Shown: piece after piece, positions 9,201 through 63,000 of the stretch
Layout: each line of letters opens with the position of its first letter
Position numbering within the stretch: position 1 is the stretch's first letter
NCBI GenBank assembly: GCA_030704615.1
Contig: CM060732.1
Location: 37,386,001 to 37,450,000 of the forward strand
Length of the DNA: 64,000 bases
Reading direction: 5' to 3'
Origin: Takakia lepidozioides
Lineage: Eukaryota > Plantae > Bryophyta
Translations under genes and position numbers: made by a program
Notes under the pieces: model-generated
The model's database searches: none
What the model was told of the DNA's origin: nothing
Seen by the model: only the letters and a program-made list of their open reading frames with translations

Positions 9201-9359
9201 AAACCCTGAAATGGCACGAGGGTTAGGGTTTGGGAGGCTGACATGGAGAGCAGAAACCCTGAAATGGCACGAGGGTTAGGGTTTGGGAGGCTGACATGGA
9301 GAGCAGTAACCATGAAATGGCACGAGGGTTAGGTTTTGGGAGGCTGACATGGAGAGCAG
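9201..9359. repeat. tandem repeat, 3 x 53 bp containing telo-box-like motifs
   Basis: Unit AAACCCTGAAATGGCACGAGGGTTAGGGTTTGGGAGGCTGACATGGAGAGCAG; copies 1 and 2 are identical, copy 3 has a few substitutions. Confidence 0.95.
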
Positions 9360-22563: not shown

Positions 22564-22570
22564 TATATAA
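22564..22570 (+). promoter_or_regulatory. TATA box (AGTATATAAG) upstream of hammerhead
   Basis: The same 10-mer lies 47-50 nt upstream of the hammerhead core in all four copies (22564+, 23794-, 53408+, 55556-). Confidence 0.65.
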
Positions 22571-22608
22571 GCTGGGGGTGAGGCTCTGTGTACCTCATTC
22601 CATTTCTC

Positions 22609-22650
22609 TCCCACTGATGAGCTCACTTGTTGAGCGAAACTAGTCTGGGA
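22609..22650 (+). ncRNA. minimal type I hammerhead ribozyme (intact core)
   Basis: UCCCA-CUGAUGA-GCUCA(CUUGU)UGAGC-GAAA-CUAG-UC/UGGGA: stem I, conserved core, stem II, palindromic ACUAGU stem III; GUC cleavage after 22645. Confidence 0.9.
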
Positions 22651-23055
22651 CTTTATAGAGATTGGCTACTATTCTGCATCTAAGGGTTCTTGTCTCAATG
22701 TTTCTTCTATGCTGTTGAGCCTTAGGTTTGCTATCATCTATTGCATGCTTTAAACTCATTCTCGAGTGTTGCGTGTTAGATGAGCATCTAAGTCGTTCTC
22801 TACTATGTCTATTCTCTAGCAAAAGAGATAGGGTACTATTCTCCTGTCATCTCAGTGAAATAGTTTCAATCACATATATTTGTCTATTTTTTTGCAGTTG
22901 CATTTAGAACATCAACATCACTTCTTTTTAGCTTTTTGTCTCTCTGGATCAACGCTATTAGTTTTGATTCCCAGGATCTAGATATCTACAAGTTTTTTCA
23001 AGGCGCCCATACCCGCCCCCCCCCCTAAAAACTTTTTGGTTCGGATTGTGTTCTT

Positions 23056-24754: not shown

Positions 24755-26711
24755 TGTCAATGACGAGAACATGACTAAACACAAACAAGAGATAAGACTA
24801 GAGGTACAAGGCTAGACAAGAAGTCAAGGTCGGCGTGGCTGAATGCACGATGAGTAAATATGAATCAAGATGATATTTATAACAATGAACAAGAGTACAA
24901 GATATTGGAACACAACTTGAATACTGGAATGCTGGAAACTAGACTTGAGTACCAGATACTGGAAACTGGGCTAGAGTACTGGGAACTGGACTGGAGTACT
25001 GGAAACTGGAAACAAGAGTAGCTTGAACTGGTGTTGGAGAGACTGAAGAGTGTCCAGTCTCGTCTCCTATATATACTAGTTACTAAGAAGTTTCCCTAAG
25101 AAGCTGCCCCTATGGAGGTTTCTTGCTGGAGAAATTTCCAAGATTAAACAAAGGTTTCTTGATGAAGAAGCTTCCTTAAACAAAGGAGGTATCTTGATGG
25201 AGAAGTTTCCTCCAAAGGAAGCTTCCTGAGTAGTTTCCCAAGTTACTCTTGGTAATTTGGTAAACTCCCGGTAATTTGGTAAGTAATGGTAAATTATGGT
25301 AGATCATGATAAATATCGGTAAGTCATGGTAACTTCTGGTAACATGATAACTTGGTAACTTCTGGTATTTACTCCTTATAAGTTCCTCTGGGCTATGTCC
25401 GTGACATCACCCCCTCCTCTAGCGCAGAGTTCCTCGAGGAGCGGTAAAATCTTGGACTTGCTTAGAGTTGGAGAAAATCCAAAATCCGGCGAATGGTACT
25501 TGCCAAGCATTCGGCTCTTCGTTCTTGACTCAAATGATTTATAGGTCCCTGCAACCATCGATAGTGTCTAACACCTTGAACTTGGGACCACGCAGTGATT
25601 TGAGCATTCTGATTTTCGAAGTTGCCTTCAAACATGATTTCGTTGTCATCTGGGTCCGAAGCCTCAACTCCAACAGGATTATCAGACTTCGAGTAGGCTC
25701 CACTTGCTGTCGTACGGGGTTCAGACGAGGAAGTACGCGTCACATTGGTGGCCCATCGTCTCGAGAGCATCGGCATGATGTTGAAGGTCGTGAGAGTCGG
25801 AACGGTTGATCTGGTAGCTGGGTAAGCGACAACTCCAATGTATCTGGTTCCTGTGACTCCATACTGCCAATACAAGATGCAGGAGTGTTGAAGTGTAGCT
25901 ATATATAGATGTGTGGTGCTCATCCCTCCTTAGCATGTATCAGATAAATTGAATGTGGAGTCTTCACCTTGAAGCTAACTTGGCTGACATCATCGTTGAG
26001 ACGTCTTATTGACGTGTAGCTCGGCTTAGCTGGATATCGTTGATGATGAAACTCTTGGACTTTGTCAGATGCATTGACGAGGTTGGATGAAGGTTTCCAC
26101 GTTCGTTCGCTGATGTCGTAGTCTTTCCAATGTACGAAATATTCAAGACGTTTATACTTGATGCGAGAGAGGACTTCGTCGACTTCATACTCAATTTCCT
26201 GATTAACTTCGATTGGTGGAGGTGGTACGGAGACTCTCCCTGGAATATTCGATGGATGATACAACTCCAATAATGAAACATGAAAGACTGGATGGATGCG
26301 CATACTTCGTGGGAGTTCAAGCCGAAAACTGACCGGATTTATTTGTCGAATAATTTTGAATGGGCCCAGGCGTTGATAATCCAACTTCCTTGATGGTCGC
26401 GAGGTTTGTATGTCCCGTCGAAGAAGCCACACACGATCTCCAACCTTGAACTGGGGTTGGAGTTGGCGACGTGATCTGCATACTCTTGTATTGTTTTTTA
26501 GCTTCTGCGAGGTGAAATGTAAGCTCCTTGTGAATCGTAGCAAGATGAGTAGCAAGGTAGCAAGGTTTCTTGCAGCAGGGCTTTTCAACAGTCTTCATGT
26601 GGAAAGGGTTTGCTCGAGGATGATGACCATAATTGGAGAAAAATGGAGTTTGTTGGGTCGAAGAATGTATAGTGTTGTTGTAGGCAAACTCAGTCAATGA
26701 CAGAAGGTCCG
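24755..26711 (-). mobile_element. Ty3/Gypsy chromovirus 3' remnant (integrase C-terminus, chromodomain, PPT, 3' LTR)
   Basis: LTR 24755-25406 with TGTCA..TGACA termini; PPT AGAGGAGGGGG adjacent on the minus strand; AYNN/TPFF, LGPFKI, HPVFHVSLL and chromodomain EYEVDEVL..YFVHWKDY. Confidence 0.88.
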
Positions 26712-27460
26712 TGTCGCGCTGCTTTTACTCACCCATCCCTTCGCTATCCGAGGTGGGAACTCCAAGATAGAAGAGTTGGAAATCTCTAAGCACTCAGCCC
26801 GTTCAGAACAATCAGTCATGACCTACAGCTAGTGTATCATGGGGGTGTTTCCTATTTGTACTCCTTCCGCATTATGTTAGCGAGTTTCCCTTACTATCTG
26901 CAATTAAGTATCAGTTTGCTTCAGAAATCTATCAAGTTCATCCATTCATTCCACAGCTTCACTCAGGGTCTCTTACACAGTGTGAGTATGAAGTATGTAT
27001 CAGATTAATATTATCAAGTATCAGGCTGAAGCCATGGTGTCTCTATTCTACTACATTACAACTCTACTTCTTGCATTCAGCCAGTATAACAGATCGTTTT
27101 CCTCCTACTCCGTGCTCTCCCTCTTTCCTCAGAGATGCGCTCTCCGCTTCATTTCCAAGTTTGATCCCCACGAAGTGATCTCCTCCAGTCCCCGCTCCTC
27201 GTTATCTTCCTTTCCGTGGTTTCTAACCGTTTCCTCACTAACCGTCATCCGTGAACAACATGTTCCATTCGCAGATGTTGTTCCCCACAGTCGTTCCCTG
27301 TCCTGCTATCCGTTCTCTATGGTTGTGAAGCTGTGTCAAGCTGTGTGAAAATTGTGACTGGCTGTGGCCTGTGTTGGGCGTGGTGAGGGCTGTGTCGAGC
27401 TTGTGATGGCTGTGTCGGTGTGTCGGACTTGACGGGCTGTGTGTTGGCTGTGACGGGGTG

Positions 27461-30400
27461 TGTCGCGGCCCTTTGCCTTGAGGGCAGGGGGTCGGGACAC
27501 ATGAGGGGCTGCCCCTGTGGTGGGGGCAGCGGCAGCGATAGGTATGGGGGGCTGAAGCACCCTTGAGTGCCCAAGACACCCAAGGAGGCGGAGGCGCTCA
27601 CTAGGTGGAGCCCCGCACACCGGGTTGCGGTGGAGGTGGCTCCACAAGGTGGTGTGGTAGCTTAGTGGGACTTAGTGGGGTGGCATAGGACTCACCATGG
27701 GGTGGAGACCTCGAGGTGGGAGTCGTGGGGAGTCTTGGGACTCATCACGGTCCATTGGGGCGCGGTGAGTGGGCCAAGACTCACCGCGACTCACCACCGG
27801 GAGTCGAGGGTTTTCGTGGTGGTGGTTCGCCATAAAATGGCATGGCTGGTTATGAAACCCCGCGGACAGCTACAGAAGTATATATAGGGAGTAGTAACCC
27901 GAGAACGGTGCAAGCCCGTTGGTGACCAAAACTAGTGAGTAAGCGAGCGAGCCGGAAAGCGACCAAAGAGTGGGGAGCTGTTCCGGACTGCCATCTACAA
28001 AGGGAATTCTCCTAGTCCCAAATAGGTGGAGGGTTTAGAGGGAAGCGGAAGGGGACCGTTATGTCCCGGTGAGCAGCCGAACTCCAAGTTGGCCCGGCGG
28101 CCAGGTTGGGAGTCAGGCGCGCGCATCAAAGCGAGTAACTATGACTTGAAGGGGAGTTTACCGAACTGAGGTGTGCGACATTTGGTATCAGAGCTTAGAG
28201 TTCAGTACGCGATCGTCCTTGGGATTGGCCTCATCATGGGGTCGGGCAAGCCGAAGCGAAAGCGGAACGGCCCAAAAGATGATGATCCCGGTGAGCCCGA
28301 TGGGGGCGACGTGTCACCGAGGCGGCCGTTTGAGGAAGCGATTAATGTTTCCGAAAACGAGGCCGCTCAGGAGCGGGAGGAATCCGAGGAGTCGGAGCCC
28401 GAGGAATCTTTGAGAGCTCCGACAAACCAAGAGATGCCTCCCATGCCGGCAGCCTTTTGGGAAGGGTTGTTGGCGCAGTTTGGCGGGACGTTGAAAGACG
28501 TGTTGAAGGCGGCTAATGCCACTTCCACCAAGGCAAAGTTTAAGGTGAAGCCTAAGGAACCCGGCACCTTCGAGGGCGTTCGAAACCGGAAGGCACTCAA
28601 CACCTGGCTCCTGGAGCTAGAGCAGTACTTCCGGGCGGCCAAGTTGAGTGACGAGGATCGGGTGGAAGTGGCTCCCACCTATTTGAGGGGCTATGCTCAA
28701 CAATGGTGGCAGAAACGCCTTCACGACCGAGGCCCAAGCCCGGAAACCTTGAACTGGAGTGAGTTCAAGGAATTGATGAAGAGACAGTTTGTGCCCCTCA
28801 ACGCATCCTGGCTTGCCCGGGACAAGATGAGGAATTTGAAGCAAACAGATGACATTCGGGGGTATGTCCAGGCTTTCAATGTGCTGTTGCTCGAAGTCGC
28901 GGACATGGCAGAACCAGAAATGGTCTTCAACTTTGTGGCGGGACTGGCCCCATGGGCTAGGCGGAAGTTGGAGGAGAAGCCACCCAAGACTTTGAACGAG
29001 GCAATTGAGAGAGCTGAATGTTTCTCGGATGTCCCTAGGGGTGAGAGACAAGGCCGTACGGAGCTGAACCACAAGAAGACCGGCGGGAAGGTGACTCCTC
29101 CCGACCGGAAAAGAAGTGGGATAGGCCACGCGGCGAAAATGGCACGTGGAAATCGAAGGGAGGTCCTTCACACGTCAAGGCGGCACCCGGTGCTTCGAAA
29201 GGAAAAGCGGGTGGAGGAGCGACTTATGGCGGACAGAAGGCGACCTTGATGGAGTGTGTTTCAATTGCGGGGAGCCCGGGCACATGGCCAAGAAGTGCAC
29301 GAAGCCCCGGCAATTGAACATGACTCGGGCGACCACGGAGCTGTCGGAAGATACCATCAGTCGCTTGGTGGAAGCGGTGGTCGCCAGGACTTGCAAGGTA
29401 GGCAAATTTTCTTGTGAGTTGTATCAGGAAACTGGCGCCTTACGAAAGGGAGTCAGTTATTGTTCGTGGATGGGATAATATCCGGAACTAATGTGTCGTT
29501 GTTGGTGGACACAGGAGCGTCGCACTCCTTCATGACGCCGGCGGCGGCGCGAAAGTTGGGACTCCCGACAAGTGACGTGGGGGCCTCTATTGAGGTGCGC
29601 TCTGCCAAAGGAGAACCTCAGTTGGCGACAAGGTTGGCGTTTGATGTTCTCTTCAACTGGGGTTGGGAGGGACGTGAGAACTTCACTATCTGCGAGATCG
29701 ATGGAGTGGATCTCATTTTGGGAATGACCTTTTTGAGCAAATCCGGAGCGGTCATAGATGGCCGCAAGAGAGTAGTCACGCTGCCATGTGGGAATGGTGG
29801 CGAGGTTTTACGAGTGTCGGAAACGCCCAAATCCGTGGGAGGGCGAATAAACCTTCTATCAGCAAAGGAGTGGGCCGTGGAGGAGCACACGAGTCCCAGT
29901 TTTTGCTTTACATTAGAGAAGTGAAAGGAGAAGGCGATGGGGAGCCGAGCCCAGATTGGATCAAGGGGATTTTGGAGAAATACCAGGATGTGATGCCGGA
30001 GGATTTACCAAGCGGCTTGCCACCGCGAAGAGGAGTTGACCACAAAAATTGAGGTGATACCGGGATCGGAACCGCCTGCCAAGGCGCCCTACCGGTTGAG
30101 CCACAAAGAGTTGGTCGAGCTGAAGACTCAGCTCAAAGATCTAATGTCAAAGGGGTACATCCGGCCGAGTAAGTCACCTTACGGAGCCCCGGTGCTATTT
30201 GCAGACAAGAAGGATGGGACGCTGCGGATGTGTGTCGATTACAGGGCTCTGAATAAGGTGACTATCAAAAACCGGTACCCTTTGCCAAGGATCGACGACC
30301 TCTTCGATCGGTTGGCAGGAGCGAAGTATTTCAGCCGGATCGACTTGCGCTCCGGCTATCACCAAATTCGGGGGTGGCGAAGGAGATGAGGAGAAGACCG

Positions 30401-33400
30401 CGTGCAGGACAAGGTATGGTTCATATGAGTTCTTGGTGATGCCTTTTGGGCTCACCAATGCACCAGCGACATTTAGCACGCTGATGAACAGCCTTTTCCA
30501 GGAGTGGTTGGATGACTTTGTGATCGTGTACATCGACGACATCTTGTGTACTCGAAAACAAAGGAGGAGCACCTGGAGCACCTCAAAAGGGTGTTCCAAA
30601 AATTGCGAGAAGGGAAGCTGTATGCCAAAGCTTCAAAGTGCGAATTCGGGGTCACAAAAGTGGAGTTCTTGGGGCACGTGATTACACAGGATGGGATCAA
30701 AATGGATGACAGAAAGGTGAGGGCGATCTTGGACTGGGAGCCTCCGACTTCGGTCCCGGGAGTGCGATCCTTCCTAGGACTCGCCTCCTATTACCGGAAG
30801 TATGTGAGAAATTTCGCCAAGATCGCGGGGCCGCTGTCGGACCTTCTGTGTAAATCCAAAGTCTGGGTATGGAACACATTTTGTGGCCAAGCTTTTGCTG
30901 AATTGAAGCAGCGGATGACGGAAGCTCCAGTCTTAAAAATCCCGGAGTTCGATCGTCCGTTTGAGATTCATACAGATGCATCGGACTTCGCAATTGGGGT
31001 GTACTTATGCAAGATGGACGTCCAGTGGCTTACGAAAGTAAGAAACTGAATGAAGTGGAGCGACGGTGGCCGACGCACGAAAAAGAGATGAAGGCGGTGG
31101 TACATTGCCTTGAACTCTGGCGCCACTATGTTGGTTCCAACCCAGTGAAGGTGTTCACGGACAATGTCACGGTGAAGTATTTTGCCACGCAGCCCAAGTT
31201 GTCCCCAAAACAACTTAGGTGGCAAGATACTTTGGCAGTGTTCGACGTGGATATCCAGTACAAACCGGGACGGGACAATGTGGTGGCCGATGCTTTAAGT
31301 AGAAAGCAAGTAGCTCTTGTTGGTGTACAAGGGCGAGACGGCGCTCCAAAGGAAGATCCGGAAGGCTTGCCGGAAGGATGAGCTGGCAAAGTGCGTGATG
31401 CAGAACTTGAGAATGGGGGTTAAATCGCAGTTCCACTTGCAAAACGGACTGCTTGTATAAGCAAAAACGTCTCTATGTGCCAAAGGGAGGGATCAGGGAT
31501 AGTCTCTTGAGAGAATGCCATGATAGCCCGCTTGCGGGCCACGGTGGAGCCAAGCGCACTGCGGCACTCTTGAAGAAAGAGTATTTCTGGCCCAAACTGA
31601 GGGAGGAGGCAGAGGAGTATGTTAAGACATGCACCACATGCCAACAAAACCGGAGCGAGTATAAAAAGCAAGCGGGGCTGTTACAACCCTTGCCGATTCC
31701 AGAGGGGACTTGGGAAAGCGTCTCGATGGATTTTTGACTGCTATGCCGCTGTCAAAAGGATTCGATGCAATCATGGTGGTGGTAGATAGGTTCAGTAAAA
31801 TGGCCCATTTCATCCCCACCAAGGAGACGGCAACTGCGCAGGAGACAGGGCGACTTTACTTCGCCCACGTCTTAAAGCATCATGGAGTCCCGAAGGATAT
31901 TGTCTCGGACCGCGATCCAAAGTTTACGAGTAAATTCTGGAGAGCACTTTGGAAGAAGATGGGGACGAGGCTGAAGATGAGCACCGCCTTCCGACCTACG
32001 ACGGACGGCCAAACGGAAAGAGTGAATTCCGTAGTGAAGCAATTCTTGCGGAATTACGTGTCGGCAGACCAATCAGACTGGATGGAACACTTAGACGCGG
32101 CAGAGTTTGTTATAATAACACAGAACACTCCGCGACGGGAGTTTCCCCTTTGTGTTGGTCTATGGAAAAGCACCTCTGGTGCCGACAAGTTGGGCCGCCC
32201 AGGACGTTGAGGAACCGGCAGTAGCGGCGGTACTGGAAGAACGCGAGCGTTTGTTGAAGCGCAAAGTACAACATTGCCAAAGCTAGGAAACGGTATGAAA
32301 GGCAGGCGAATCGGAAGCGGAGGGAAGTGAAGTTTGAGGCAGGCACAGAGGTCTGGTTGAACATCAAGAATTTTCGACTACCTCCGGAAATGAGTCCGAA
32401 GTTCGTACCTCCGTATATGCGGGTCCCTTTCGCATTCGGAGGGTTATGAATGAGGATGTGTATGAATGGAGCTGCCAGCAAACAGCAAGGTGCACCCAGT
32501 AGTATTCCATGTCTCCCTTTTGAAGCCTTACTTCAAAGATGAAGCACGTCCGAATCGGCAGCAAGTGTTGCGTCCGCCACCTATGCTGTTGGATCATGAA
32601 AATGAACCCGAGTACGAGGTGGAGGCAATACTTAAGTCGAGGAGGTTCAAGAACCGAGAAACGGAGTATCTCGTCAAATGGAAGGGCTATCATCTTGTGA
32701 GGCATCTTGGGTGCGTGCCTCAGAAATGGGAAACGCATCCGAGGCAGTTGCAGCGTTCGAAGGGCGACCTCAAAAGCGGAAGAAGCGTTGATGGGACATC
32801 AACCTTGGAGCGTGGGGGAGGAAATGCATGCTTAGCCCGGTTTAGCTAGCTCAGGAATCCGATTGCAAAAACTTGTATTGTAAAAAAAATTTGTGATAAA
32901 GGAAATGGGTTCCAAATATTGTGCGTCCTATTGTGTTTGGAATGGTGATGCATGGGTGGTGTTGGCTGGTGTGTAGAATGCATGCTAGCTTACAAAAGTG
33001 GGAGAGGTAAATTGGGTTAATCGTGTGTTTGCGCAGTGCCGAAATCGGGTGACTCCCATCCAAGGGGCAAGGAAACTTGCGCCTTATTTGGGAGTTCAAG
33101 TGCTAGTGCGCACCTGGCGCGTGCGCGTACTATAACTGCGCTACCGAGGGGGTTGCCTTGTAGTGCGGGCTAACGCGGAAGCTACGTGCTTCCGTTCACG
33201 TACTATAATCGTGTAGCCTCGGGACGAAGTCGTAGTGCGGCTTCGGCGTGTTCCCGTACCTCAGGCCAGCATTCCAAGGCGGACCCAATTGTAGTGATTG
33301 GGGCACGGTTGGTTCAAGGTTATCTTCCTAGTCAAAGAGGGTTCCAGGTGAACCCTTGCTCAAGGTGATGCCAAAAGCGGCATCATGAGCGATCGCAAGC

Positions 33401-34417
33401 AATGTTGTTGCAGTAAGGCGATTCGATCCTCGGGGAGGATCGTTCCTTGGCCTTGAAGTAGGCCAAGAAGAGTGCACTGGGAGGAGCTGGAGAGAGGCTC
33501 CACCCTTGGCCGGGACTTGGAGGAAGTCGGCCGAACTAGCTAGTGGAGAGTGGAGTCAAGTGTGGGGTTTGGTTCTTTGCCATGGGACGCCATGGTACGG
33601 AAACAAACTCCTTGATGTGGGACGCCACAACTTGGATGTTCGTTTCTACAAAATGGACAAGTCGATGAGGACATCGACTCCCTGTTGGTAGGGGTGTGTG
33701 TCGCGGCCCTTTGCCTTGAGGGCAGGGGGTCGAGACACATGAGGGGCTGCCCCTGTGGTGGGGGCAGCGGCAGCGATAGGTATGGGGGGCTGAAGCACCC
33801 TTGAGTGCCCAAGGCACCCAAGGAGGCGGAGGCGCTCACTAGGTGGAGCCCGCACACCGGGTTGCGGTGGAGGTGGCTCCACAAGGGGTGGTGGTAGCTT
33901 AGTGGGACTTAGTGGGGGTGGCATAGGACTCACCATGGGTGGAGACCTCGAGGTGGGAGTCGTGGGGAGTTGGGACTCATCACGGTCCATTGGGGCCGCG
34001 GTGAGTGGGCCAAGACTCACCGCGACTCACCACCGGGAGTCGAGGGTTTTCGTGGTGGTTCGCCATAAAATGGCATGGCTGGTTATGAAACCCCCGCGGA
34101 CAGCTACAGAAGTATATATAGGGAGTAGTAACCCCGAGAACGGTGCAAGCCCGTTGGTGACCAAAAACTAGTGAGTAAGCGAGCGAGCCGGAAAGCGACC
34201 AAAGAGTGGGAGCTGTTCCGGACTGCCATCTACCAAAGGGAATTCTCCTAGTCCCAAATAGGTGGAGGGTTTAGAGGGAAGCGGAAGGGGACCGTTATGT
34301 CCCGGTGAGCAGCCGAAACTCCAAGTTGGCCCGGCGGCCAGGTTGGGAGTCAGGCGCGCGCATCAAAGCGAGTAACTATGACTTGAAGGGGAGTTTACCG
34401 AACTGAGGTGTGCGACA
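27461..34417 (+). mobile_element. near-complete Ty3/Gypsy chromovirus LTR retrotransposon
   Basis: LTRs 27461-28180 and 33699-34417 (TGTCGC..GCGACA); PBS TGGTATCAGAGC (tRNA-iMet) at 28183; full gag-pol domain set. Confidence 0.95.
28236..32792 (+). CDS. Gag-Pol polyprotein (frameshifted in this assembly)
   Basis: Gag, [14 protein letters not shown] knuckle, protease LVDTGAS, RT ([21 protein letters not shown]), RNase H (TDASD), integrase ([23 protein letters not shown]), chromodomain [16 protein letters not shown]. Confidence 0.9.
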
Positions 34418-34424
34418 CTGTGTA

Positions 34425-39164: not shown

Positions 39165-42100
39165 AGAAGCAGTCGATGAAGGTTTTTGATGTTTCCAGTT
39201 AATGTCCCGTTCAAACTCCGGGGAAAGAGTGGAGTGGTGCACGAAGATCTCGCCAGGCTTGAGGGGGGAGCTCGTTCCAGCTGCATTGGTCTTGCACAGG
39301 GCTGCTGCATATGAGGCCCTGTCTGCCCCAGGTGTGTTGAAACTTCCTGTGGAGCACAGTTGCATTCGTGGCGTCACGTTCAATGTCTGCACAGAGTTTC
39401 CCCCATGCTTTCCTAGCCTCAGTTTGTAAGTCCCAAAATACAGTGGCAAGGAGAGAGGATGTTGTTGTTGTGTGGCCTTGGAAAATGTTCTTACAACGTG
39501 GTTTCCATAAATGCCACAACGTAGAGGCTCTAAGGGTTTCAAACACTGGGCAATTTAGGGTTCTATTCTTGGAAGCTGGGTCATAGTTAAGAAGGAGGTC
39601 TGTATCCGTGAGCTGTCTTCTGTCCCAATATCTATAGAATGACTTAACATATGGCCAGATTTTGGCTGGTTCTTGACATGAGAGAAGGCAATGTTCGATG
39701 GATTCCAATACTGCAGTGGAACAGCAAGCACACAAGAGGGCTCCCTGGAACTGTAGGCATTCCCCCACTTTGAGAACTCTATTAACAACCTGCCAAAGGA
39801 AAGCTGCTATCTTTGATGGCCGGGTTTTGATCCACACTGAGCCCCAAATGATTTTCTAGTTCTCATCGCGGAAGTTGTAGAGCCCCCATTTTGATTCCCA
39901 TTTCTTGTTCATGGGTTGGGTGATTGACAGGGCTTTGTAGCCCTTTTTTGTTATGCAAAGAAGGGTTCTGGGGTGGTGTTGAATTTCCATAACCATTCGG
40001 AGGGGTCAATATCCAATTCTGCCAGTGGCCTACCCAAAATCCATACAAAGGAGTTGGTTGCTAGCCAAGCTCTAGTGGTGATAGTGAGGGGTGGCTGGGG
40101 ATTCATACCCTTATCTGTGGCTGTCCAGCAGCAGACACGGATTGGAGTGAGAGGCATAGTTTGGATTGTCAAAGGTTCTGTAGAGGTAAGTGTGAGTCTT
40201 AGGGAGGTGGTGTTGATGGCGAATATGAAAACAACTATGGCATTTATGGATATGTCATCTACAAAACAATGGTAAGCTAGTTGTGAAGTATGATGAGTGC
40301 CCAGGTTTTTGGGACTGGTTCCGGAGGGCCTGCGGAAAGGGTGGCCAACCACTGCACTGGTACAGATTGAACAAGTTGTTGGTGGCCTTTTGTGGCCCTT
40401 GCGAGGCCTACAGCCTGAGCCATAGATTGTAGAGATATGAAACCAATCCCTGACCATATGTTATGAATTTGTCTGATGCCAAGGCAGTCCCATTTGGACC
40501 ACCTTTTTGCCTGGTTTTTTTGAGAAGGGGTCAGAGGAGTGTCGTTTCGAAACAAGTGTTGTCTCTTAACTTCATAGAAGGTACTTGGCTGGGCTTTTAC
40601 AAGCAGTTTCCTTAGCCGCCCTCAGGCTGACCAGATGTTAGACCATAGAGCGGATCCCACTGTCTTCAGATTGAATCCTTGAGTGAGCCAACGTAGGGAG
40701 GAGCTCCATGGGGTAGTCCTGAGAGGGGAGGATTTTGTAATGTGGTCATAGACCAAGAATTTCCACCATCCCCCCTCCGGCCCTACAAACCTGGGTATCC
40801 ATTGGCTAAGAAGAGCTACAATTTGTGTTTCTGGATCGAGTATCCCTAACCCCACCTTTTTTTTGGGTAAACAGATTTGAGCCAGGCTACAAGCGGTCGT
40901 TTGTTTTGTGATGAGGTCTCGGCTCCCCAAACAAAGTTCCTAAGCAGGCGCTTAATTTCCTGAATTTGTTTAGAGCTTGGGCGCCAGGAAGAAGCATAAT
41001 ACCATAATCCAGCTGAATGAATCTGATTAGCAACAAGGGCTCTTCCTGTAATTGAGAGATGTTTTGAACCCCAGTAAGTCAGTTTCCTCTTCAAGTTGGT
41101 CACTGTGGCAGCAAAAATCTGTTGGTCTGACAGTCCAATTCCATATGTGTAGCCCAGTAGTGTGGTGGTCTCCCCAGGTTTGAGCCACCTTAGCCCTTGA
41201 TCCATTCCCCATGAGGGCGGGGATCCCATTGTGGATTTTGAGAGGTTCCCTACCAGTAAACCTGAAGTCTTATTCCAGTTTACTTTGAATCCAGGTGCTG
41301 CACAAAACTTGTTCAAGGTAAACCCTGTCTGGTCCAAGTTTTCCGGGGTGGCTTGCAACATTAAAAAGGTATCATCAACGAACATTGAGTCCACCAAGAA
41401 ATTGTACTGCCTGGTAATGTAGTTAGTGACCCTGAGGCCCTTTAAACTGATTTTGCTGTAGCATATAGCCGAGTGTATCTACTACCATCAGAAACAGGAA
41501 AGGTGAGAGGGGGCACCCTTGCCTCACTGAGCGCTGTAGAGGGAACGAAGCTGATAGATGGCCATTGATTGAGACTCTGCTAGATGCATCGGTGAGTAAT
41601 ATCCTGACCCATTTGCAAAAGGATTGGGGAAAACCCAATTTAGCCAAGGCTGCCAGCAGGTATGAACATTCAACACGATCGAAAGCTTCTTAAAGTCTAA
41701 AAGGAGGAGGGCACTAGCTTGGTTTGTTCTAGCAGCGAAGTCTGGAATTTCCTGGGCTAGAAGGAGGTTATCCAATATGTATCTACCCTTGATAAACCCT
41801 GTTTGATTTGGCCTAATTATAGTTGGAAGTAGAGGTTGCAATCTAAGGGCCAGTGCCTTCGCCACTATCTTGTAGGCTACATTGAGGAGGGTTATGGGCC
41901 GATAATTGGATATGTTTGTTCTATCACCCTTTTTATAGAGTAAGGTTATAACTCCTTGTGTCATAATTGTGGGCATGTGTCCCCGTTGAAACACATGGTT
42001 TGCCATTGCAGTGAAATCCCTGGAGATTTCCGGCCACAATGCTTTGTAAAATTCCACCGATAAACCGTCTATGCCTGGGGATTTGTTGTTTTGAAGTTTC

Positions 42101-45100
42101 GATAATGCTTCACCCAGCTCTATATCTATGAACTCTCCTTCTAATTGGGAAGCGAACTGGTGGGACAGCAGGGTAGGGGTGTTTATCAAACATGATGTTT
42201 GTTCTTCTGTTGGTTGCAGGGAGTCGAGGTCACTATGAAAAAGATTATGGAAGTGCCTGCCAGCCAGCATGGCCATGGCCTTTGGTGTAGAAGTTGAAGT
42301 GCCTGATGGCTGTTCAATGAGCTCAGAAATTGTTTGAGAGGCACGTCTCAATCTTGTTTTGTCGAAAAAATATTTATTCATTTTTTTCTCCTTTTGTGGT
42401 CCAGTTGACACCCGCCTGCAATGTCCACTTCCTCTCCTGGATTTTGTGATGAATGTCAAGGTTGTTTCTGGCTTGGACATATGTACGGTATGTGTCTTCA
42501 TCACAACAGGTGGATTCTATTTTTGATTGACAAACTTTGAGGCATTTGTTTAAGGCTTTGACCTTCCTCTTTCTGATGCTTGCTAGTTCCTGACTCACCC
42601 TCTGACTTTCAATATTGACAGCCTTCAGCTTGGCCAGGAAGAGATGCGTAGGGTTCAGGAGGTCACTTCCCGCCTGAGTCCAAGCCCTTAGCAGTCCTTG
42701 CTTGAAGCTTGGCAGCTTAAGGATGAGGTTATTTATTTTGTAAATGCCTCTACCCCTTCTGTAAGAGTCTGGTAGGGTTATGGAGAGGGTAATTGGTGCT
42801 TGGTCAAAGCATAAGGGTATTGGTTCTCGAGGGGCTCTCTTAGCATATTGAACTAAGTCAAGGGAAAGGTAAGCTCTATCAAGACGAGCCATACTTAGAT
42901 CTGCTAGAGAACGGTTATTGGACCAGGTAAAGGTGATGTTTGATGACTGTCCAAAGATTGGTACTGCTTCTGTGAGGTTGTGTGTTTGCATGCAGTTGAA
43001 CCACTGGTCCATTTCTTCTGGGTTTGAGGTAAATAACCCCGCGCCTCTTCTATCCTCTTGCATCTCCACCATATTAAAATCTCCGGACAATATCCAACTA
43101 TCTATTGAAGGTTGTTCCCTCATTTTTGTGTTCAGAGTGTTCCAAAATTTTGCTCTGTCAGTAGAATCGTTGGGTGCATAAATATTCACCAGCCCAATTG
43201 GACCTGTTGAGTTGGGTAGGGATAAGACACAAAATTGCAATCTTCTGGGGAGCCAGGTTTCCTGCGTAGTGAGGAACGGTTGAATGGTAAGTGAAAGAAG
43301 TATTGCAATACCTCCTTTCGTACCCGTGGAAGTGGGTTTCCATAAGGAGTTAGCCAATGGCCATAGAAAATCAGTGAGGCTATCTATTTTCCCATGATCT
43401 AGTTTATGTTGCTGAAGGAATATGATGGAATGATTTGCAAGGAAGGGAGTCAGCCAGGTTTTGTTTTTCAGCCTTTGTAGAAAAGCTGGGTCTACTCCCA
43501 ACCCTCTTATATCATGAATGGAGGTTAAAGATCATTGGCAAGTCATGGTAGGCTGAGGCTGACAGTCTCATTTGATAGCCTAGAAGTGTGATAGAAGAAT
43601 TTAACCTTACTGTCTCTTGGTCGTAGGGAATTTTTCCAGACATAATTGTCCGGGGGCTTGCGAGTTTTATTCTGGATGAGTATGAAAATCCCTCTTGGTT
43701 TTGTGTTTTTGGGTAGGTCATGGGATGAAAGGAATTGTTCTGCAGACACTGTGGATATGGTTATAGATAAAACCAAGGCTTCAGTCGGGAAGAACATCAC
43801 ATTGAAAATATCGTTAAAACCAGGGTATCTCTCACTGATTGAGCCATCGGAGGGAAGAGTTCCAGAGGGTATGTTTTCTGGCAAATCAAACACTGGTAGC
43901 CTATGTCTGACCTGCTTCCCCCCCACGTATTTCTCTTTCTCGCATAATATCTAGTATCTAGCAGGGTTCCCAGATAAGACCAGATAAATGAAACAGGGTG
44001 AGAGAGAGGATGGTACCTTGTTTGGGGAAGGTGGAGAGGAGGGAGTTTAGACCTTGGGTGGAGAAGTCACTTGAGAGTTCGGCAGCGAGTTAGCCTGGGT
44101 TGTGTCAATGATTGTTGGGGAGGATAATTGTTTTGCTCGTTTCACCGAGTCCATCATGTTGTGATTCTCCTCTTGCGTAGAAGATTCCACCTGGGAGTCT
44201 GAGGAAGAGTGAGAGTGATCTGTCCATCTGGTGCAATTAATATGATCTCTTGTCCTTTGAACCTTCATTCTGTAATTTCCCCATCCACTTCAGAGTCCAA
44301 GTGGGCTCCCAGCAACTGAAACCCATTTATCAGGGTATCCTGGTTTCGAATTTGCAAACTGTGACTCCCTCTGGGGGCTGAGAGCAGGTCCTCATAAGTC
44401 CAGATAGCCTCTATCGGTGGAGGCGAGGCATAAATTTCTACATCCTCCATGAGAGCTAGAATGTGGGTTGAAGGTTTGACACTAAGTCCAGGATAGTCTT
44501 CCATGTATGCCCCCATTTTGGTGAGGGATGAAAATGAATAATGTTTTTGTTGCTTGAGGAAAAATTGCTGAATTTTCCCCTTGAACAGAATTTGCGAATT
44601 GGTATTGGGTGGGTTGGTTTGCAGGAAATGCTTGAGATCTGCTAATGTTATCCATAAAGATTCGACTGTTTTCCAGTCGTCCGATGTAATGAGGATAGCC
44701 GGGGGTTTGCTTTTTCGAAAGATCAAGGGTGTCACACATGCTGCCTTCGGGGAGTCGACAATTTCCAGTGCTGAGCATCCCACCAAGTTTAGGTGTGGGA
44801 ATGAGCCGATTTGGAGACAGTTGTTAGCAAACCTAGAATTACAAGCGATTCCAATGGTGATTTTGGGGAAGGAATTACTAGTAGGGAGGGTCAATTTGAC
44901 TACTCTTGGGGGTGAGCTATCCTGATGCTTTCCTTTTCCTTGGCCGATAGATGCCCCCTGCTGCTGTGTTTCCGTGAGTTTCCCTTTCCCTTTTGTGATG
45001 GCATTCATTTGTTGCTGGTGGGCCATCACCTCTTCTTGCATCGGATCCTTGGGTGTCTCCTCCCTTCCGGGGCTTTGCCATGATCTGAGCTGTAGAGGGT

Positions 45101-52789: not shown

Positions 52790-53077
52790 GGGTGAAATAG
52801 TCTCAGTCATACACTTTAGTCATTTGCATGTCTTTGCAATTGCACTTTAGAACATATCAACATCACTCATATCCTACCTATGTGTCTTCAGAATCATCTC
52901 TTTGAGTTTTTCTGTAGATATTTGAAGTTTTTTTCGGAGCATATAACCGGCCTTCCTAAAAACTTTTTAGTCTGTACTGAGTTACTATTGCACCCGGTGC
53001 ATTCGCGCAATTTGTTGTACAGCTATATTTATAATTCCAATCTTTTGTAGACCCTAAACCCTAAACCCTAAACCCTA
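52790..53077 (+). mobile_element. 5'-truncated diverged copy of family X ending in (CCCTAAA)3.7
   Basis: GTGAAATAG..CCTAAAACTT..TTGCACCCGGTGCAT aligns with X; telomeric repeats at 53052-53077. Confidence 0.7.
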
Positions 53078-53450
53078 GACTCTACGAGTTGCTTCAGCAA
53101 GTCCCGGAGCTTCGGTTTCTTTTTCGAGCGATGATTTGTTGGAGGAATCCGCGAAAGCTGAGTTCATTCCTAGTTAAATCTAGAATGATAGGATGATTTT
53201 GTAGTGCAAATGTCCCTAGCATTATTAATTTTGCCTCTTTGATAGCCCTAGTATTGATGTTAAAGTCAAAGGGTTCCAACAATTAATTTGGATAATTGAC
53301 TAATTAATGTAGTCTTCACTTGGAGGCTAAATTAGTGCTTTAGTGGCATTATTATTGCCTTGGGAATTATCCCATATCGTTTGCACATAGTGAGGGTGCT
53401 TTTCTAGTATATAAGGATAGGCTTGGCTCTTAGGACTTCATCTCTTGGTG

Positions 53451-53493
53451 TTCCACTGGTGAGCTTGAGCAATCAAGCGAAACTTGTTTGGGA
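53451..53493 (+). ncRNA. variant minimal type I hammerhead (core A6G, GUU triplet)
   Basis: UUCCA-CUGGUGA-GCUUGA(GCAA)UCAAGC-GAAA-CUUG-UU/UGGGA; stem II differs from X but pairing is preserved. Confidence 0.75.
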
Positions 53494-54345
53494 ATAAAAC
53501 ACCTTAACTCTTTTTGTGTCTCCACACTTAGAGAAGTCGAGAGTTTAGTCCTTGCCCGCCCAGGCAACTTGGATCGAAAGAATGCTCGGCTCCAAAGGGA
53601 ATCCCAACCCTTGGATATTTCTGAGGCTTTTTTTCTTTCCGAAGCACGGGCGTATAGAGCCTTCCGTTTGGCGCCATCTTAGCCACCACTTACAATGGGG
53701 AAGGTGGTTGGGGATATATGGTAGTTGTGTCAGGCAAGCTAATTTAGCCCCGACTACACGGTTCCCCTGTCATACGCCCGATGGTCGGAGAGAAGGGACT
53801 TGGTTGATCCTCCCTCGAGTTCATCTCGAGCGATCAGAGGATTATGGGCATGCGCAAGCCTATGCCGACCTAACCTTCTCGTCGATGACCTTATGCGGTA
53901 ATCCCTCCCATTCTTCCTTAGAGGTACGAACCTCTTTTTGAAGGTGGGGCATATAAGTTTTCCAACTAGGGGTTGAGACTTGACCCTATGTTTGTGAGTG
54001 CCTTGAGCGCATGCTTGCCCATAGTGAGCAAGATTTTTTGTCGCTAAACAAGGAGAAGCAAACATAAAAAAGCTTACGGTTGGAGCGAAAGTGCCTCATT
54101 CTTAAATTAGAGAACCTTATCTCATGAGGGCGGGAGTCCTTGCATAAGACATAATAGTCTTATAGCATCCCTTTAGGCACGATAGGCGCACTTTGTATGC
54201 ATTTGTCTTGGTTTCCATTGCATTTGTATTTGGGTCCGAACCGGCCCCCCTTAAAATTTACTGTGTATTTTTTCATTATTTTTTCTACTTTTTGTTACCT
54301 TTGCAAGCCTTTGTTGACCACCCTAAACCCTAAATTCTTTTTTCC

Positions 54346-54929
54346 ATGGCGGAACTAGCATGTAACAAACATCCATGTCCTAGCTTAGGCGTTGGCCTTT
54401 TTCATGCATCCGCATCTTCTTCTTCTAGCATGGATATCTCCATTCCTCCCCCTTTGCTTGCATTTGTGCATACATCGGTCAAGGAATTCAAAAGTCTTAG
54501 GCATGAGCATGAAAAGACTTCCAAGTACCTTCAAAAATTGCGAGTGCAATTCGAAGAAGGCACCATACCCAACTCCCTTAGAATGAGTCCTCCTAAACTT
54601 CAAATATGAGATCCTGAGGCCCAATCCGTCCTTGATGCGAGCCTGGCCGAATGCACAACCGCATATCAGATCAAGTGCTTTGAAGCACTCATCAAAGCCC
54701 AAGAATCTCGACTTGCTAGCTTGACCCACAAGCTCGAGCAATCGAAACCGGTCTTTGAGACTCGCCTCTCGGATTTGATTTCGCCTTTACGATCCTTAAA
54801 TTTGATAGGTGACAAGTCTAAGTCTTCCATTGAGTTGTGGCATCTTCATCGGCATCTTCATCTTAACAATCTCTTTGTTGCTCATGTAGATGCATTTCTC
54901 ATTCACAAACAACTTTCCGACGTCAGCAA
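54346..54929 (+). pseudogene. truncated ORF resembling the N-terminal/ORF1 region of Penelope-like elements
   Basis: About 195 codons with one in-frame TGA (54607); YLQKLRVQFEEGTIPNSLR followed by a helical/coiled-coil-like stretch; cut by telomeric repeats at 54930. Confidence 0.45.
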
Positions 54930-56170
54930 GGGTTTAGGGTTTAGGGTTCAGGGTTCACATAAAGTGTCAAAACAAATATAGCAGTACAACGCGGATGCAC
55001 CGGGTGCAAAATAAACACAATCCGTGCAAACAAGTTTTAGGGGGGGCAGTTATGCACCCCTGGAAAAATTTCAAATCCTGTGGATCAAACCTGAAAGGAG
55101 AGATCCTGAGAGACAAGAAACTATAATAGAAGTATGCGAGGTGTCCTGAAATGCAACTGCAAACCTATGCAAGAGGCAAAAGTGCATATGAGAACTATTT
55201 CACTAGATGCACAAGAGAATAGAACCCTATCTCTGTTTTGCAAGAGAATGGACACACTAAGAACAACTTAGATGCAGATCTCACATGCGCTATTCGAGAG
55301 GGAGTTTATGGCGTGCACTATCGTATAGACACAGAGCACATAACAATGCAATGATCTAAAGCAGGAGATACAAACGCATCTAAAACTCGACAACTTCGAA
55401 AAACTCAACAACTTCAAAGGGTGAGACCACGAGGCAAGATCATGCAAAGTAGTGAAGCCAAATCTTTATAAACCCCAGACTAGTTTCGCTCAGCACGTGA
55501 GCTCATTAGTGGGAAAAAAAAGGAATGAAATACAAACCCCACCCCCCGCTTATATACTACTAGGATTGAACTGCCTCGTGAGGACAAACTTCCAGTGGAT
55601 GTCTCACGAGGAGAAAAACCAACCAACAAATGTCTCGTATGGAGAAAATCGTTCAAAAAGTCTCGGTGGGAGAAAGTCATCTAGTGGATGAAAACAAGTT
55701 CTCGACAAGAGAGAACCAGATCCAAAGAATAAAAATCAACCAAATAGTCAATTGTATATATCTCAAATACAACTAACTCTGTGAATTTATAACCATGCAA
55801 CAATCAATTATGTTGAAGTTAGAGCATGTTGTGCAAAGTCGTAAGGGCTGAAACCACTTCGAAAAGAACGCAAAACTCGTAAGAGCTTTGCACACGCAGA
55901 CCATCGCGCAACCATCGTCTTGCTAAAGCCTGCAGCTGTGTTGTCCTGAACGTGTCCAACCACGATCCCCACCTTCCGACCTCCAAGAAGAAACACGGCT
56001 CGGTCTTCATATTGTTGCCTCATCAAATGAATGAGCACCTTGGTCAAAAGAATGAAGATCAATATTTGCCTCCATTACGTGAAGGTGATTAAAGATGTGT
56101 TGCAGCTAACACTGTAAGAAAGTTTAGGGTTCACAAAAAGTGTCAAAACAAATGTAGCAATACAACGGGG
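54930..56170 (-). mobile_element. full unit (+~45 nt) of family X with telomeric repeats at the left junction
   Basis: High similarity to 23177-24375; GGGTTCAC..AAAGTGTCAAAACAAAT recurs at 54951 and 56127 (1176 bp period). Confidence 0.9.
55473..55514 (-). ncRNA. hammerhead ribozyme copy with G5A core mutation (predicted inactive)
   Basis: Identical to 23711-23752 except CUGAUGA to CUAAUGA (position 55507). Confidence 0.85.
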
Positions 56171-57196
56171 ATAAACGAGCTGTTGCGGCGAGCTGCTGCG
56201 GTGCTGCTGCGGCTGCCAACGGCGCGAGTTCCCGCCATTGCAGGGCGTCTCTCCCCCGTTCACCACGGCTCTCTATCTCTTCAGCTCGTTTAGATCGCGC
56301 CTCTACGCGGCGTTCCTACCACACAGCGGAGAGATAGATCAGCCCGTGCTTAGGGCAAGAAAGCAAGAGAGAAAGTGAGGGAGGAGGCGGTGCTTACCTT
56401 GGGCGTTGGGGCAAACTCCTTGGGGCTTTGCGACCACCTCGGGCTCAGCAGCAGGTGCGTTTCTCCTCCACCCTAAACCCCACTCTCTGAACTACCTCTC
56501 TCGCAAAGAACAAACGAAAACGGGAGGGGAAAGAGGTGCTTCAAGCACTTAGGGGGAAAAAAAAAAGGGCACGACGCCTATGTGCGACGCCCGGCCGTCG
56601 CACGCCTGCGCCCTTTTTTTTTTTTGAAATGTAAAAATGGTATTTGCGACGGCGGGCCGTCGCTGCTTGCGACCCCCGACCCCATAAATAAAAAAACATG
56701 TCGCCCCCCGCGACGGCTTTTCTTCGCGGGGTACGACCCCCAGGTAAAAAATTTAAAAAAAATGCGTCGCCAAATGCGATGCGAGGGTGTCGCAGGAGGC
56801 AACGGTCGGCCTTTCTGGTCTTAGGGTTTAGGGCCTTTTGGGGTTCTTAGTTTTTATTTTTATTTTGTTTTTTTTCATATGGTACTGGGTTAGGGTGTTT
56901 GCTTTTCTTTATGGTGCTGGGTTTTGGATTGTGTGACTTTGGTTGTGGGTCTTGGGGTTGAAAGGATAAACGGTGTAATTGGGATTCATATACCCAAAAT
57001 GTGGTTCAATATGATAAGTGCAAAGCACTGGGTCTCAACAAATTTTTCCATGGTGTGGGCATCCTGAAGATAGAACGTGAGGAAGGATTTATTGTATTGG
57101 GCTCTCTAGCACCATAGGGATGCTCCGCCTTTGGTTACCAATTTTGAAAGCCCCGAGGCTAAAGCATAGGGTTTTTTCGCCAACGGTTTTTGAGAA

Positions 57197-60059: not shown

Positions 60060-63000
60060 ATGGATGATCTCTTAATGCATCATGTGGGCGCTGATGCATC
60101 CCATGAAGAGGGAACCCGGCCAATCGATGATCCTAAAATGGCCCCCTCAAATGACATGGAGAGGGAGGCGAGAACTCATTTGTATGAAAGGGCGAAAGTA
60201 AGTCAACTTTCAACAATCTTACTTTTGCTCAATCTTCAAATTCGATTTGGCATAAGTAATGTTGGGATGTCTGCCATAATGTGAACTATTGCAGACTATA
60301 TCCTTGCTCCACACTTGAAACCCAAGATGCCACGGTCGCAGAAAGAGGCGCGCGAAGTCTTGGACTCTGTAGGGATGGGCTATAAGATTTTTCATGCATG
60401 TCCATGTGATAAAACCATATACTATGGAGATGATTCGCGTCTCACCAAGTGCCCAGAGTGCAAGAAAGACCGATATCGGGATGATGTCCAAGGGAAAAAA
60501 GTACCACGCAATGTATAAGCGTCATTCCCCCTCGCATGGAGATTACTTTATTTAATCTTCTCAATGCATGTAAAGTGTATTCCACAAAGTTTAGGGTTTA
60601 GAGAGTAGTACTCATGCAAGATCTGATTGTGGTTTTGGAAGGAGTGAGTGAGGAGTGGAAGGAGCGACGTTCGGTTTTGACCATTCACACCCAAATGAGG
60701 GAGAGACTGCATAAAGGGAAAGGCATAAAGGTGGTGTATTATGTGTGCTAATGGGATGATTACATGTGGGGGGCGTGGGGTATTTCATCCTAGAAAATGC
60801 ATTACTTTCCGATCATCCCGCGATTGAGGGCACAATATCGAAGCCCTGAATTGGCCAAGACTCATGAGATGGCACGCCTCGCATCGGAGCCCCTCGGGAA
60901 AGGTGTGCGGGCCACAAGATTCACAAGCATAGAGGCATATTGAAGAGATGTGGCCTTTTCTCTTGGAGGACCCACGACATGTCCACCTCGGCTTGTCCTC
61001 GGATGGGGTCAACCCATTCTCTGTCCAATCATATAGTCATTCCACTTGGCCGGTGTCCATGGTGAATTACAACATCCCTCCGTATTTTTCAATTAAAAAA
61101 TGCCATATCATGTTGGCCGCCATTGTGCCAAGTGAGTGTACTCATTTCATGTTTATTATTGCCTTAGATTTTACATTAAACTTCTGATCTCTGACTCAAT
61201 TTGGATGCAAGATTGATGAGTGACATAATCATGAAGTAAGATGTGTAATTCATTTTGTAGTATAATTTGCATATTGGTGGAGCATTGAAACAATGATGTG
61301 AATGTCTCATAGGGAAAAAACAAGTGACAAACATAGATACATACTTGCGACCTCTTGTTGATGAACTTAAGGAGCTATGGAGGGGGGTCCCGACATTGGA
61401 TGCTTTACTTGACCCTATGGCCGGACAATCTTTTCAGATGAGATGCATCTTGCTTTGGACAATTCATGATTATCTAGGTATATTATGTTCCCCATGAACA
61501 GCTCGCGTACATTCATTTGTCAATGCCGGATAATATCGATGAGAATTGGGATTGATTGAAGTAGCGGCGACAGTCTTGTGCACCGTAGTGGGGTAGATGG
61601 CATTATGGGCCATGCACATGACAATTTTTTGTTTTTGCTAATGTGGCGGGATGTGTAGTACATGACTAACTGTTTACTTGGGGCTAAGCGCCCAAGGGTA
61701 CCATGCATGCTTGCATTGTGACGATGATCTTGATGCACATAGCTCCCGCCATCTTCACAAGATGGTATTTCCCAACTACCGCAAATTTCTTCCTATGAGC
61801 CATCGATGGAGAAGAAGAGAGAAACACTTGTTTGATGGCAAAGAGGAAGTACGCCCCCCCCCTATATGACACCGTCGGGGCAGTTTTGGGATGACCGATG
61901 GAAGGAAGCCCATGCGGGCACGGACGTTGAAGTGGACGTGCCCGGCATGAAACGACTTTCAATCTTCTACGAGTTGCCATATTGGGCGGTACATATTCCA
62001 CAAAAACACCGTCAATATCCCTATGCATGCATGTGATATTGCACAATTGGTATGCGTTGCATTGTCACTTTCACGTAAATTTTTTTTGTGTAAGTCTTCG
62101 TGGGTGGGGATATATGTAGGACCTGAAAAAAACCATCTTCTAGATCCCATGCATATTGAGAAGAATGTCTACTCGTCTTTTTTTCGGGTTCTTCATGGCA
62201 CGCCGGCAAAGATTAGAGTGGCTGCAAAAGGAGATTCTCTCGGTGTTAGAAACGAGCTTGAGGAGCAGGGTCGCATGCGCCATCTCTTGGCCGAACAAAA
62301 TGGTGTGGACCCAAAGGGTGTTGTACGGTGGAAGTATAGGCGCGCATCTTGGCAATGGACAAAGGAGGAATACAAGAAAGTAATAGCCACCATAAGTGCT
62401 GTCCGAACACCAACTGGTTATGGGTCATCCCTCCGTACGAAGTTCAACAAAGAAGACGGGGTCCATGGTTTGAAGTCTCATGACTACCACAATCTATTGC
62501 AAGACATCTTGCCCATTGCAGTACGTGGGACATTGACTCCTTAGGTTCGTGAGACAATCTATAGATTGGGAGGCTTGTTTCGGTGGATTCGCTCCAAAGA
62601 GTTGGACGAAGCGGATTTTCCACGCATGAAGAAGGAGGCGGCGTAGGTAATGTGTATGTTGGAGATGCACCTTCCTCCCTCGTTCTTTGACATCCAAGTG
62701 CACTTGGTAGTGCACTTAGTGCAAGAGGCTTCGATTGCCGGCCCCGTTCATTCTCGGTGGATGTACTTCCTTGAGCGTTGTATGAAGACTTTGAAAGGAT
62801 TTGTAAGACAAATGTGCCCGGATGGTAGCATGGCGGAGGGGTATACGTTGCAAGAAGCTATGTTCTATTGCATGGAGTACATGACAAGGGTGGATGAGGA
62901 AGCCCCTCGGATGTAGAAGGAAGGGGAGGATGCACGAACCAAAGACATCGTTTTGCCCAAAAAATCGAAGAGGGTAAAATTGCCGACCTTGGTGATTGAG

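Follow-up and report, generated by a model that had tools for sequence, protein, structure and literature searches.

The DNA analysed here is a stretch of 64,000 nt from Takakia lepidozioides (assembly GCA_030704615.1, contig CM060732.1, positions 37,386,001–37,450,000, forward strand), referred to below as the window. It contains a non-coding repeat, family A, with a unit of 1148–1176 bp, which was delimited by BLAST of the region against the window and with a repeat finder; the same searches give three pieces on one strand, A1, A2 and A3 (Table 1). A1 and A2 are 94.5% identical across the unit and are separated by few indels, one of which is a 28-nt promoter-proximal repeat. The RNA sense of both copies is the minus strand, the plus strand being first-strand cDNA, and in RNA sense the unit is ordered as body, TATA box, hammerhead, tail of ~535 nt and CCCUAAA motif. 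The relatives A' and family B are oriented opposite to A1, A2 and A3.

Table 1. Family A, its relatives and their sequence features in the window
Feature	Position	Strand	Description
A' (older diverged relative, inverted)	22559–23052	+	single-unit piece crossing its hammerhead; TATA 22564–22570; intact hammerhead 22610–22650
A3 fragment	23045–23177	-	0.11 unit
A2	23178–24757	-	at least 1.37 units; 1581 nt; own unit 1148–1158 bp
A2 hammerhead	23711–23751	-	intact: CCCA-CUGAUGA-GCUCA..UGAGC-GAAA-CUAGUC/UGGGG
A'-type tail, 5'-truncated	52792–53079	+	ends in (CCCTAAA)3 CCCTAGA
Family B element	53080–54334	+	USE-like ATCCCATATCG 53369–53379; TATA 53408–53414; ends in (CCCTAAA)2
Piece X	54335–54929	+	family B attached to left end
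A1	54930–56172	-	1.04 units of the 1176-bp non-coding element
A1 telomeric run at cDNA start	54930–54953	+	GGG(TTTAGGG)2 then TTCAGGG
A1 hammerhead, type I	55473–55513	-	core mutated, CUAAUGA (T at 55507); helix III palindrome ACUAGU
A1 TATA box, TATATAA	55550–55556	-	~40 nt upstream of hammerhead core, RNA sense
A1 overshoot (second pass over unit start)	56123–56172	-	TTTAGGG at 56123–56129 + ~43 nt
Second telomere-like motif sites	55035–55047, 23273–23285, 24421–24431, 23010–23028, 54245–54256, 52955–52965		

The longest open reading frame of the unit has 98 codons' worth of protein (98 aa), a Pfam search of the unit returned nothing below E = 0.008 and nothing at its cut-off, and a word search retrieved no protein homologue of the unit, its 84-aa ORF included. 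The sole Pfam match that might have marked a coding body, NuiA (E = 0.0085–0.068), falls under the cut-off and was treated as chance. Penelope-type reverse transcriptase is absent from the unit and from the ten scanned window ORFs of ≥200 aa. Within the element there is no tRNA primer-binding site at up to 2 mismatches, no polypurine tract (no purine run of ≥11 nt) and no target-site duplication beyond a chance 4-mer; because it is without all three, the element is not of the LTR type. Ty3/gypsy and LINE elements account for other ORFs of the window and include a plus-strand Ty3/gypsy element (27455–34424; ~970-bp LTRs 6.24 kb apart and 97–100% identical; gag ORF 28173–29249) and a minus-strand LINE with endonuclease, reverse transcriptase and zf-RVT domains (39211–43501). 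Three 53-bp tandem units holding GGGTTAGGGTTTGGG lie at 9198–9356.

Double telomere repeats (TTTAGGGTTTAGGG, ≤1 mismatch) are found at nine places in the window, where shuffled sequence predicts 0.03. Junctions of telomere repeats with flanking DNA are found at 54930–54953, 23178–23191, 53052–53079 and 54321–54334; near-double repeats at 56820–56833 and 60590–60603 lie on no recognisable element copy. Both informative family A copies start at the motif, and 2–3 additional telomere repeats stand there in place of the upstream unit sequence: A2 opens at 23178 with TTTAGGGTTTAGGGTTTA, i.e., (TTTAGGG)2TTTA, and in A1 the single, unit-own TTTAGGG recurs at 56123, a start-to-start distance of 1176 bp. 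An earlier note on this DNA had described A1 as a copy that begins at the telomeric motif, runs through hammerhead and TATA box, completes the 1176-bp unit and overshoots its start by ~45 nt, and had described the other locus as a copy of at least 1.37 units starting at 23177; both descriptions were confirmed, with the overshoot measured at ~50 nt and the second start placed at 23178. The 1.37 units of A2 are a lower bound because its right end meets unrelated DNA. That flank (24758–26588) leads to a minus-strand Ty3/gypsy ORF with integrase SH3 and chromodomain (25920–26588), the window holds neither a second copy of the flank nor a continuation of A2, and that Ty3/gypsy insertion may have truncated A2.

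Inside the copies the units meet differently. The inner junction, AAAG-TTTAGGG-TTCAC, has a single repeat and is the same by alignment in the A1 overshoot, in the second unit of A2 (motif at 24333–24339) and in A3; because it is identical at three sites whereas newly made junctions carry extra repeats, the unit junction was inherited via an RNA template. It looks like the fossil telomere-repeat junction of two stacked elements that was later copied as internal sequence. An origin of the extra 50 nt and of the 0.37 unit at the level of DNA (tandem duplication, unequal crossing-over, gene conversion or an assembly artefact) is accordingly very improbable: tandem repeats do expand and contract in DNA, and the window is rich in other repeats, but the same junction recurs at three sites in register with the same unit, the starts of the copies coincide with the telomere motif, to which repeats are added, and the repeated parts are 4.7–10% diverged and therefore are not collapsed or duplicated reads. 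DNA-level tandem duplication, which the earlier note itself had set against its reading, is rejected, independent duplications being excluded by the one-repeat junction that the three sites share.

Details of the starts bear on how synthesis was primed. The TTCAGGG variant at the start of A1 repeats the element's own GGGTTCA, which stands there twice (54947–54960). The C of GGGTTCA can come only from the element's own UGAACCC, which argues for slippage back on the RNA template; the reverse transcriptase seems to have slid back and recopied its template in the manner of telomerase, the alternative being slippage in DNA after insertion. The motif region, AACCCUAAA, corresponds to one repeat plus two bases and is telomerase-template-like. 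At 23177–23195, A2 has GGGTTTACAG where the unit has GGGTTCACAG; this fits a primer ending in ...GGGTTTA that paired over a G:T wobble and was kept in the DNA.

A3 consists of ~100 nt of body, the junction motif (23146–23152) and 25 nt more. On its left it meets the inverted A' copy, which belongs to the older subfamily and abuts by its RNA-3' side (tail-to-tail), through a GCACC microhomology instead of a telomere repeat; on its right it is joined to A2 through added telomere repeats (23177/23178), with an overlap of only G or GT. Since the left join lies ~100 nt downstream (RNA sense) of the motif, the template of A3 reached well past the motif. Such joins suit an explanation in which a reverse transcriptase working on a linear RNA of at most one unit jumps to another RNA, at its CCCUAAA region or 3' end, or slips back and re-primes: the A3/A2 junction is such an event, with a stop 25 nt past the motif, two repeats added at a 1–2-nt overlap and a new copy begun; GGGTTCA, templated by the element, is repeated at the A1 start, as slippage predicts; and the left end of A3 is joined by microhomology. 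The switch junctions that can be seen carry extra repeats, however, whereas the unit junction has one repeat and is the same in three places, and template switching or re-priming accounts better for chains than for seamless units; as the source of the copies longer than a unit it is improbable.

Past the motif, cDNA ends after 50 nt in A1 (where similarity to the unit stops, at 56172), 424 nt in A2 and 25 nt in A3, and none of the three copies ends at the hammerhead cut site or at the expected transcription start (0.46–0.50 unit). The ends of A1 (56172) and A3 (23177) are only ~25 nt apart in unit coordinates, which has a chance of roughly 4%, and in RNA sense the A1 end lies directly on the 3' side of a small hairpin, GCAC-CCG-GUGC. 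The two ends could be close because of a pause site of the reverse transcriptase or a second RNA 5' end, or by coincidence.

The ribozyme of the unit is a hammerhead whose predicted cut in A1 falls between 55478 and 55477. Its core is intact in two of four copies (A2 and A') and is decayed to CUGGUGA in family B (53453–53492). Helix II is altered on both sides between families (GCUCA/UGAGC vs. GCUUGA/UCAAGC in family B), and helix III has 2 bp and a 2-nt loop within the palindrome ACUAGU. The features of the minimal, dimer-dependent type (CUGAUGA, GAAA, helices I and II and the GUC triplet) are all present at 22610–22650 and 23711–23751. Judged by these features, it is the minimal dimer-type hammerhead of Penelope-like elements (PLEs), and self-cleavage is predicted. 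Rfam gave no hammerhead match at gathering scores; run in E-value mode, model HH9 (type I, clan CL00010) returned 14.6, 16.4 and 19.8 bits where the cut-off is 52, the best score being that of the A' copy (22610–22650), and in the HH9 alignments the helix III loop of the model is deleted. With ViennaRNA, the monomer folds at −12.0 and the dimer at −32.2 kcal/mol, the dimer by swapping helix II; no double hammerhead is formed in the prediction, to which no weight was given. PLE minimal hammerheads with such a helix III are reported to cut only as a pair (PMC4209133). A1 and A2 have one hammerhead each, of this dimer-dependent type, so that RNA transcribed through either locus would be expected to remain uncut. 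Families whose remaining sequence has diverged to about 70% still keep the hammerhead, which suggests a role of cleavage in vivo.

Outside the window, the exact family hammerhead was found in 0 metagenome contigs, and two metagenome scans yielded no family A copies; a looser hammerhead pattern matched nine contigs (L001–L009), which share only the ribozyme with the family. L001 and L002–L009 (JAAUYA01 contigs), L007 included, have hammerheads with the same ACUAGU helix III. Several of these contigs bear C-rich repeats of the CACCC type directly upstream of the ribozyme, loosely recalling the (ACACCC)n/(TCACCC)n of rotifer Athena, and L007 has two identical hammerheads 491 bp apart, in the manner of animal retrozymes.

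Three to four USE-like repeats, CTCC.ACGAGAC, precede the TATA box of A1 (about 55565–55700), and their number in family A varies between copies (the 28-nt indel of A1 vs. A2). In family B, ATCCCATATCG stands 28 nt before the TATA box and is one mismatch from the plant snRNA upstream element. We infer a promoter role for these TATA and USE-like elements from their sequence; promoter spacing in families A and B does not clearly point to either Pol II or Pol III. About 85–90 nt upstream of the priming motif stands a second telomere-like motif, which in RNA sense reads as a C-run and then UAAAA(C) and is kept in A, A' and B despite diverged surroundings; it could be a protein-binding site or an alternative landing site.

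To the left of A1, 52792–54929 forms a chain in one sense: A' tail, (CCCTAAA)3.5, family B, (CCCTAAA)2 and X. A1, which runs the other way, was primed at a break within X, at its right end, so the region records more than simple terminal additions. Copies that pass through the hammerhead are found also among single-unit relatives (22559–23052 and 53080–54334); crossing the hammerhead is thus ordinary in the group.

From the junctions, reverse transcription was primed by a DNA 3' end of TTTAGGG repeats that had annealed to CCCUAAA inside the element RNA. The template ran on in element sequence to either side of the motif, had an uncut hammerhead and exceeded one unit in length; synthesis stopped at variable points, after 1.04 and at least 1.37 units. 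The cut site lies 531–538 nt upstream (RNA sense) of the CCCUAAA motif, with which the earlier argument holds that a monomer running from hammerhead to hammerhead would give only ~520 nt of cDNA, or about 535 nt at the distance measured here; because the copy crosses the cut site and the unit junction, the template was not such a monomer. It had been concluded that crossing the cut site requires a circular template or an uncleaved multimer. The shared junction bears out an uncut template of more than a unit; a circle is not required, and rolling reverse transcription of a circular RNA, the headline of the earlier note, is not borne out, as an uncut linear multimer fits and the divergence test described below is neutral.

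With moderate confidence, A1 and A2 are read as retrocopies of a non-coding hammerhead derivative of endonuclease-less PLEs, made from a linear read-through template of several units. The template would most likely have been a linear read-through RNA of a locus with at least two units, transcribed from the TATA box of the upstream unit. Such a transcript may escape cleavage through its helix III of only 2 bp and a 2-nt loop, the type published as cutting only when two copies pair. The stretch of ~535 nt from hammerhead to motif would take the role of the PLE pseudo-LTR, A2 being a nearly full pseudo-LTR/body/pseudo-LTR copy and A1 its 5'-truncated version. The longest transcript from hammerhead to motif of a two-unit locus has 1.46 units, and no copy in the window is longer; as each of the three lies below this maximum, all fit a linear template. 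The partial tandem with an adjacent inverted copy recalls the layout of PLEs. Several points tell against the linear template. Run-off on an RNA defined by a promoter should pile up at the cut site or the transcription start, and the observed ends are elsewhere; about half a unit would be lost per generation, so that the family must regain length, which a circle would supply; and the retention of the hammerhead in diverged families suggests that its cleavage is of use in vivo.

A circular template was weighed as well. Paired hammerheads would cut multimers to 1176-nt monomers, a host RNA ligase would close them, and a telomeric end would prime at CCCUAAA for a reverse transcriptase that circles more than once. 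The geometry is compatible with it, in that the start is fixed, the ends vary and copies exceed a unit; a monomer circle with one dimer-dependent hammerhead would resist re-cutting (PMC4209133); the sequence loss per generation is solved; the hammerhead has been retained from family to family, both sides of helix II having changed; and the scheme has been published for PLEs (PMC4209133, discussion) and retrozymes (PMC7761336). Yet DNA cannot separate it from a linear multimer, the ligation junction being seamless in both; the longest copy has at least 1.37 units, with no product of several turns in the window; the sole PLE studied in vitro uses mainly unprocessed RNA, and no public RNA reads have an end at the cut site (PMC11167929); and a circle needs all the steps of the linear scheme plus cleavage and ligation. 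That the copies were rolled off a circle is for these reasons unlikely. Equally doubtful is the fuller proposition that a 1.18-kb, hammerhead-processed circular RNA is copied in rolling fashion from its CCCUAAA site by a telomerase-related reverse transcriptase, which would make the element the plant counterpart of animal non-LTR retrozymes. The earlier note had called circular templates established for retrozyme circRNAs: the circles are reported to exist, and the circle as cDNA template is put forward as the most likely pathway and not as a proven step (PMC7761336).

Divergence between successive passes was also compared. The two passes of A2 (23191–23600 vs. 24339–24755) differ at 4.7% of sites, and each differs from A1 at 4.9–5.8%; private changes in 407 sites number 12 in A1, 7 in u1 and 11 in u2, a star tree. 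That the A2 passes are no more diverged from each other than from A1 is expected if they were identical at insertion, as from a circle, but 4.7% is expected also from a template of two slightly different units, and the test is neutral because the value fits a circle and two near-identical units alike. In A1, the overshoot differs from the first pass (54946–54996) at 4–5 of ~50 sites, which is a count against a circle, although it is not significantly above the roughly 5% found elsewhere. Polarisation with the 70%-identical A' copies as outgroup was too noisy, with one clear shared-derived site.

For the way in which PLEs and retrozymes make copies of more than one unit, two templates have been put forward: a circle (2014 and 2020) and an unprocessed multimer (2024). 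The idea of a circle is thus not new, the argument having been published in 2014 (PMC4209133) and 2020 (PMC7761336). What family A adds is a cDNA start that is fixed and can be recognised: it is the telomere motif, whose distance from the ribozyme cut is known, while animal retrozymes are described without such a start; because the start is fixed, every genomic copy has a measurable length in units. If the circle were true, the literature consulted would offer no earlier retrozyme-like element whose cDNA start site is known.

Among known systems, the closest likeness is to endonuclease-deficient PLEs (Athena and Terminon of rotifers; Coprina of fungi, protists and plants, e.g., Selaginella), in which reverse-complement telomere repeats at the RNA 3' end pair with G-rich DNA ends, a type I hammerhead lies near the 3' end and 5'-truncated elements are joined head-to-tail in chains by telomere runs (PMC8557442, PMC6431247, PMC4209133), as at 52792–54929. 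In these endonuclease-less elements, the ribozyme near the 3' end stands beside the telomere repeats, in a stacked, telomere-attached arrangement (PMC6431247), and a canonical helix III is reported for the Selaginella elements (PMC4209133). The element described here differs in being without a reverse transcriptase gene, in having its hammerhead ~535 nt upstream of the motif and not adjacent to it, in the position of the motif inside a repeating 1176-bp unit, in its minimal, palindromic helix III, and in the location of its copies at internal sites in both orientations. A tie to an autonomous partner is suggested by layout, the window holding no PLE reverse transcriptase gene. If the endonuclease-less ribozyme sits downstream of the reverse transcriptase gene, copying of that gene would likewise need an uncut ribozyme.

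The standard PLE layout comprises pseudo-LTR partial tandems, 5' truncation and neighbouring inverted copies (PMC8557442), and all three are found here: A1 and A2 are partial tandems of 1.04 and at least 1.37 units, the tail at 52792 is truncated, and an inverted copy lies at 22559–23052, tail-to-tail where the published arrangement is head-to-head. In the one PLE studied in vitro, reverse transcription begins inside the RNA, the proposed template being a multi-copy unprocessed mRNA from a repetitive locus, and hammerhead mutants have no effect on insertion in vitro (PMC11167929). With endonuclease-containing PLEs the family shares insertions of more than one unit, an adjacent inverted copy and a start of reverse transcription inside the RNA (PMC11167929, PMC8557442). 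Theirs starts at a site non-homologous to the cleaved target, whereas here the start is directed by 7–11 nt of telomere-repeat pairing, with no endonuclease, AT-rich target or ORF.

Metazoan non-LTR retrozymes are likewise non-coding, have one type I, dimer-type hammerhead per unit and give insertions of more than one unit; PLE machinery has been proposed to mobilise them (PMC7761336; bioRxiv 10.64898/2026.07.22.740005), and is proposed to mobilise the present element as well. The unit here is of 1176 bp, compared with about 150–300 bp, and the host is plant-type; a TATA/USE-like promoter is present where retrozymes are described as promoter-less; and there is a defined priming motif, none being known for the animal elements (PMC7761336), which are expressed as circular RNAs. 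Plant LTR retrozymes, too, are plant retroelements that bear a hammerhead and are non-autonomous, and for them as for family A a circular template has been proposed (PMC4918200). They have a type III hammerhead in ~350-bp LTRs, a tRNA-Met site, a polypurine tract, a 4-bp duplication and Ty3/gypsy helpers, none of which is found here.

HeT-A and TART of Drosophila form head-to-tail terminal arrays in which a promoter near the 3' end of one element reads into the next; their reverse transcriptase is of another clade, they end in poly(A) and they lack a ribozyme. The order of TATA box, hammerhead, tail, junction and next body in family A fits the same promoter logic, by analogy. In the literature searched, no published description of this combination (telomere-primed, non-coding, retrozyme-like unit, plant-type) was found. 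We regard family A as a non-coding relative of endonuclease-less PLEs that is plant-type, is primed at the telomere motif and has a retrozyme-like unit.
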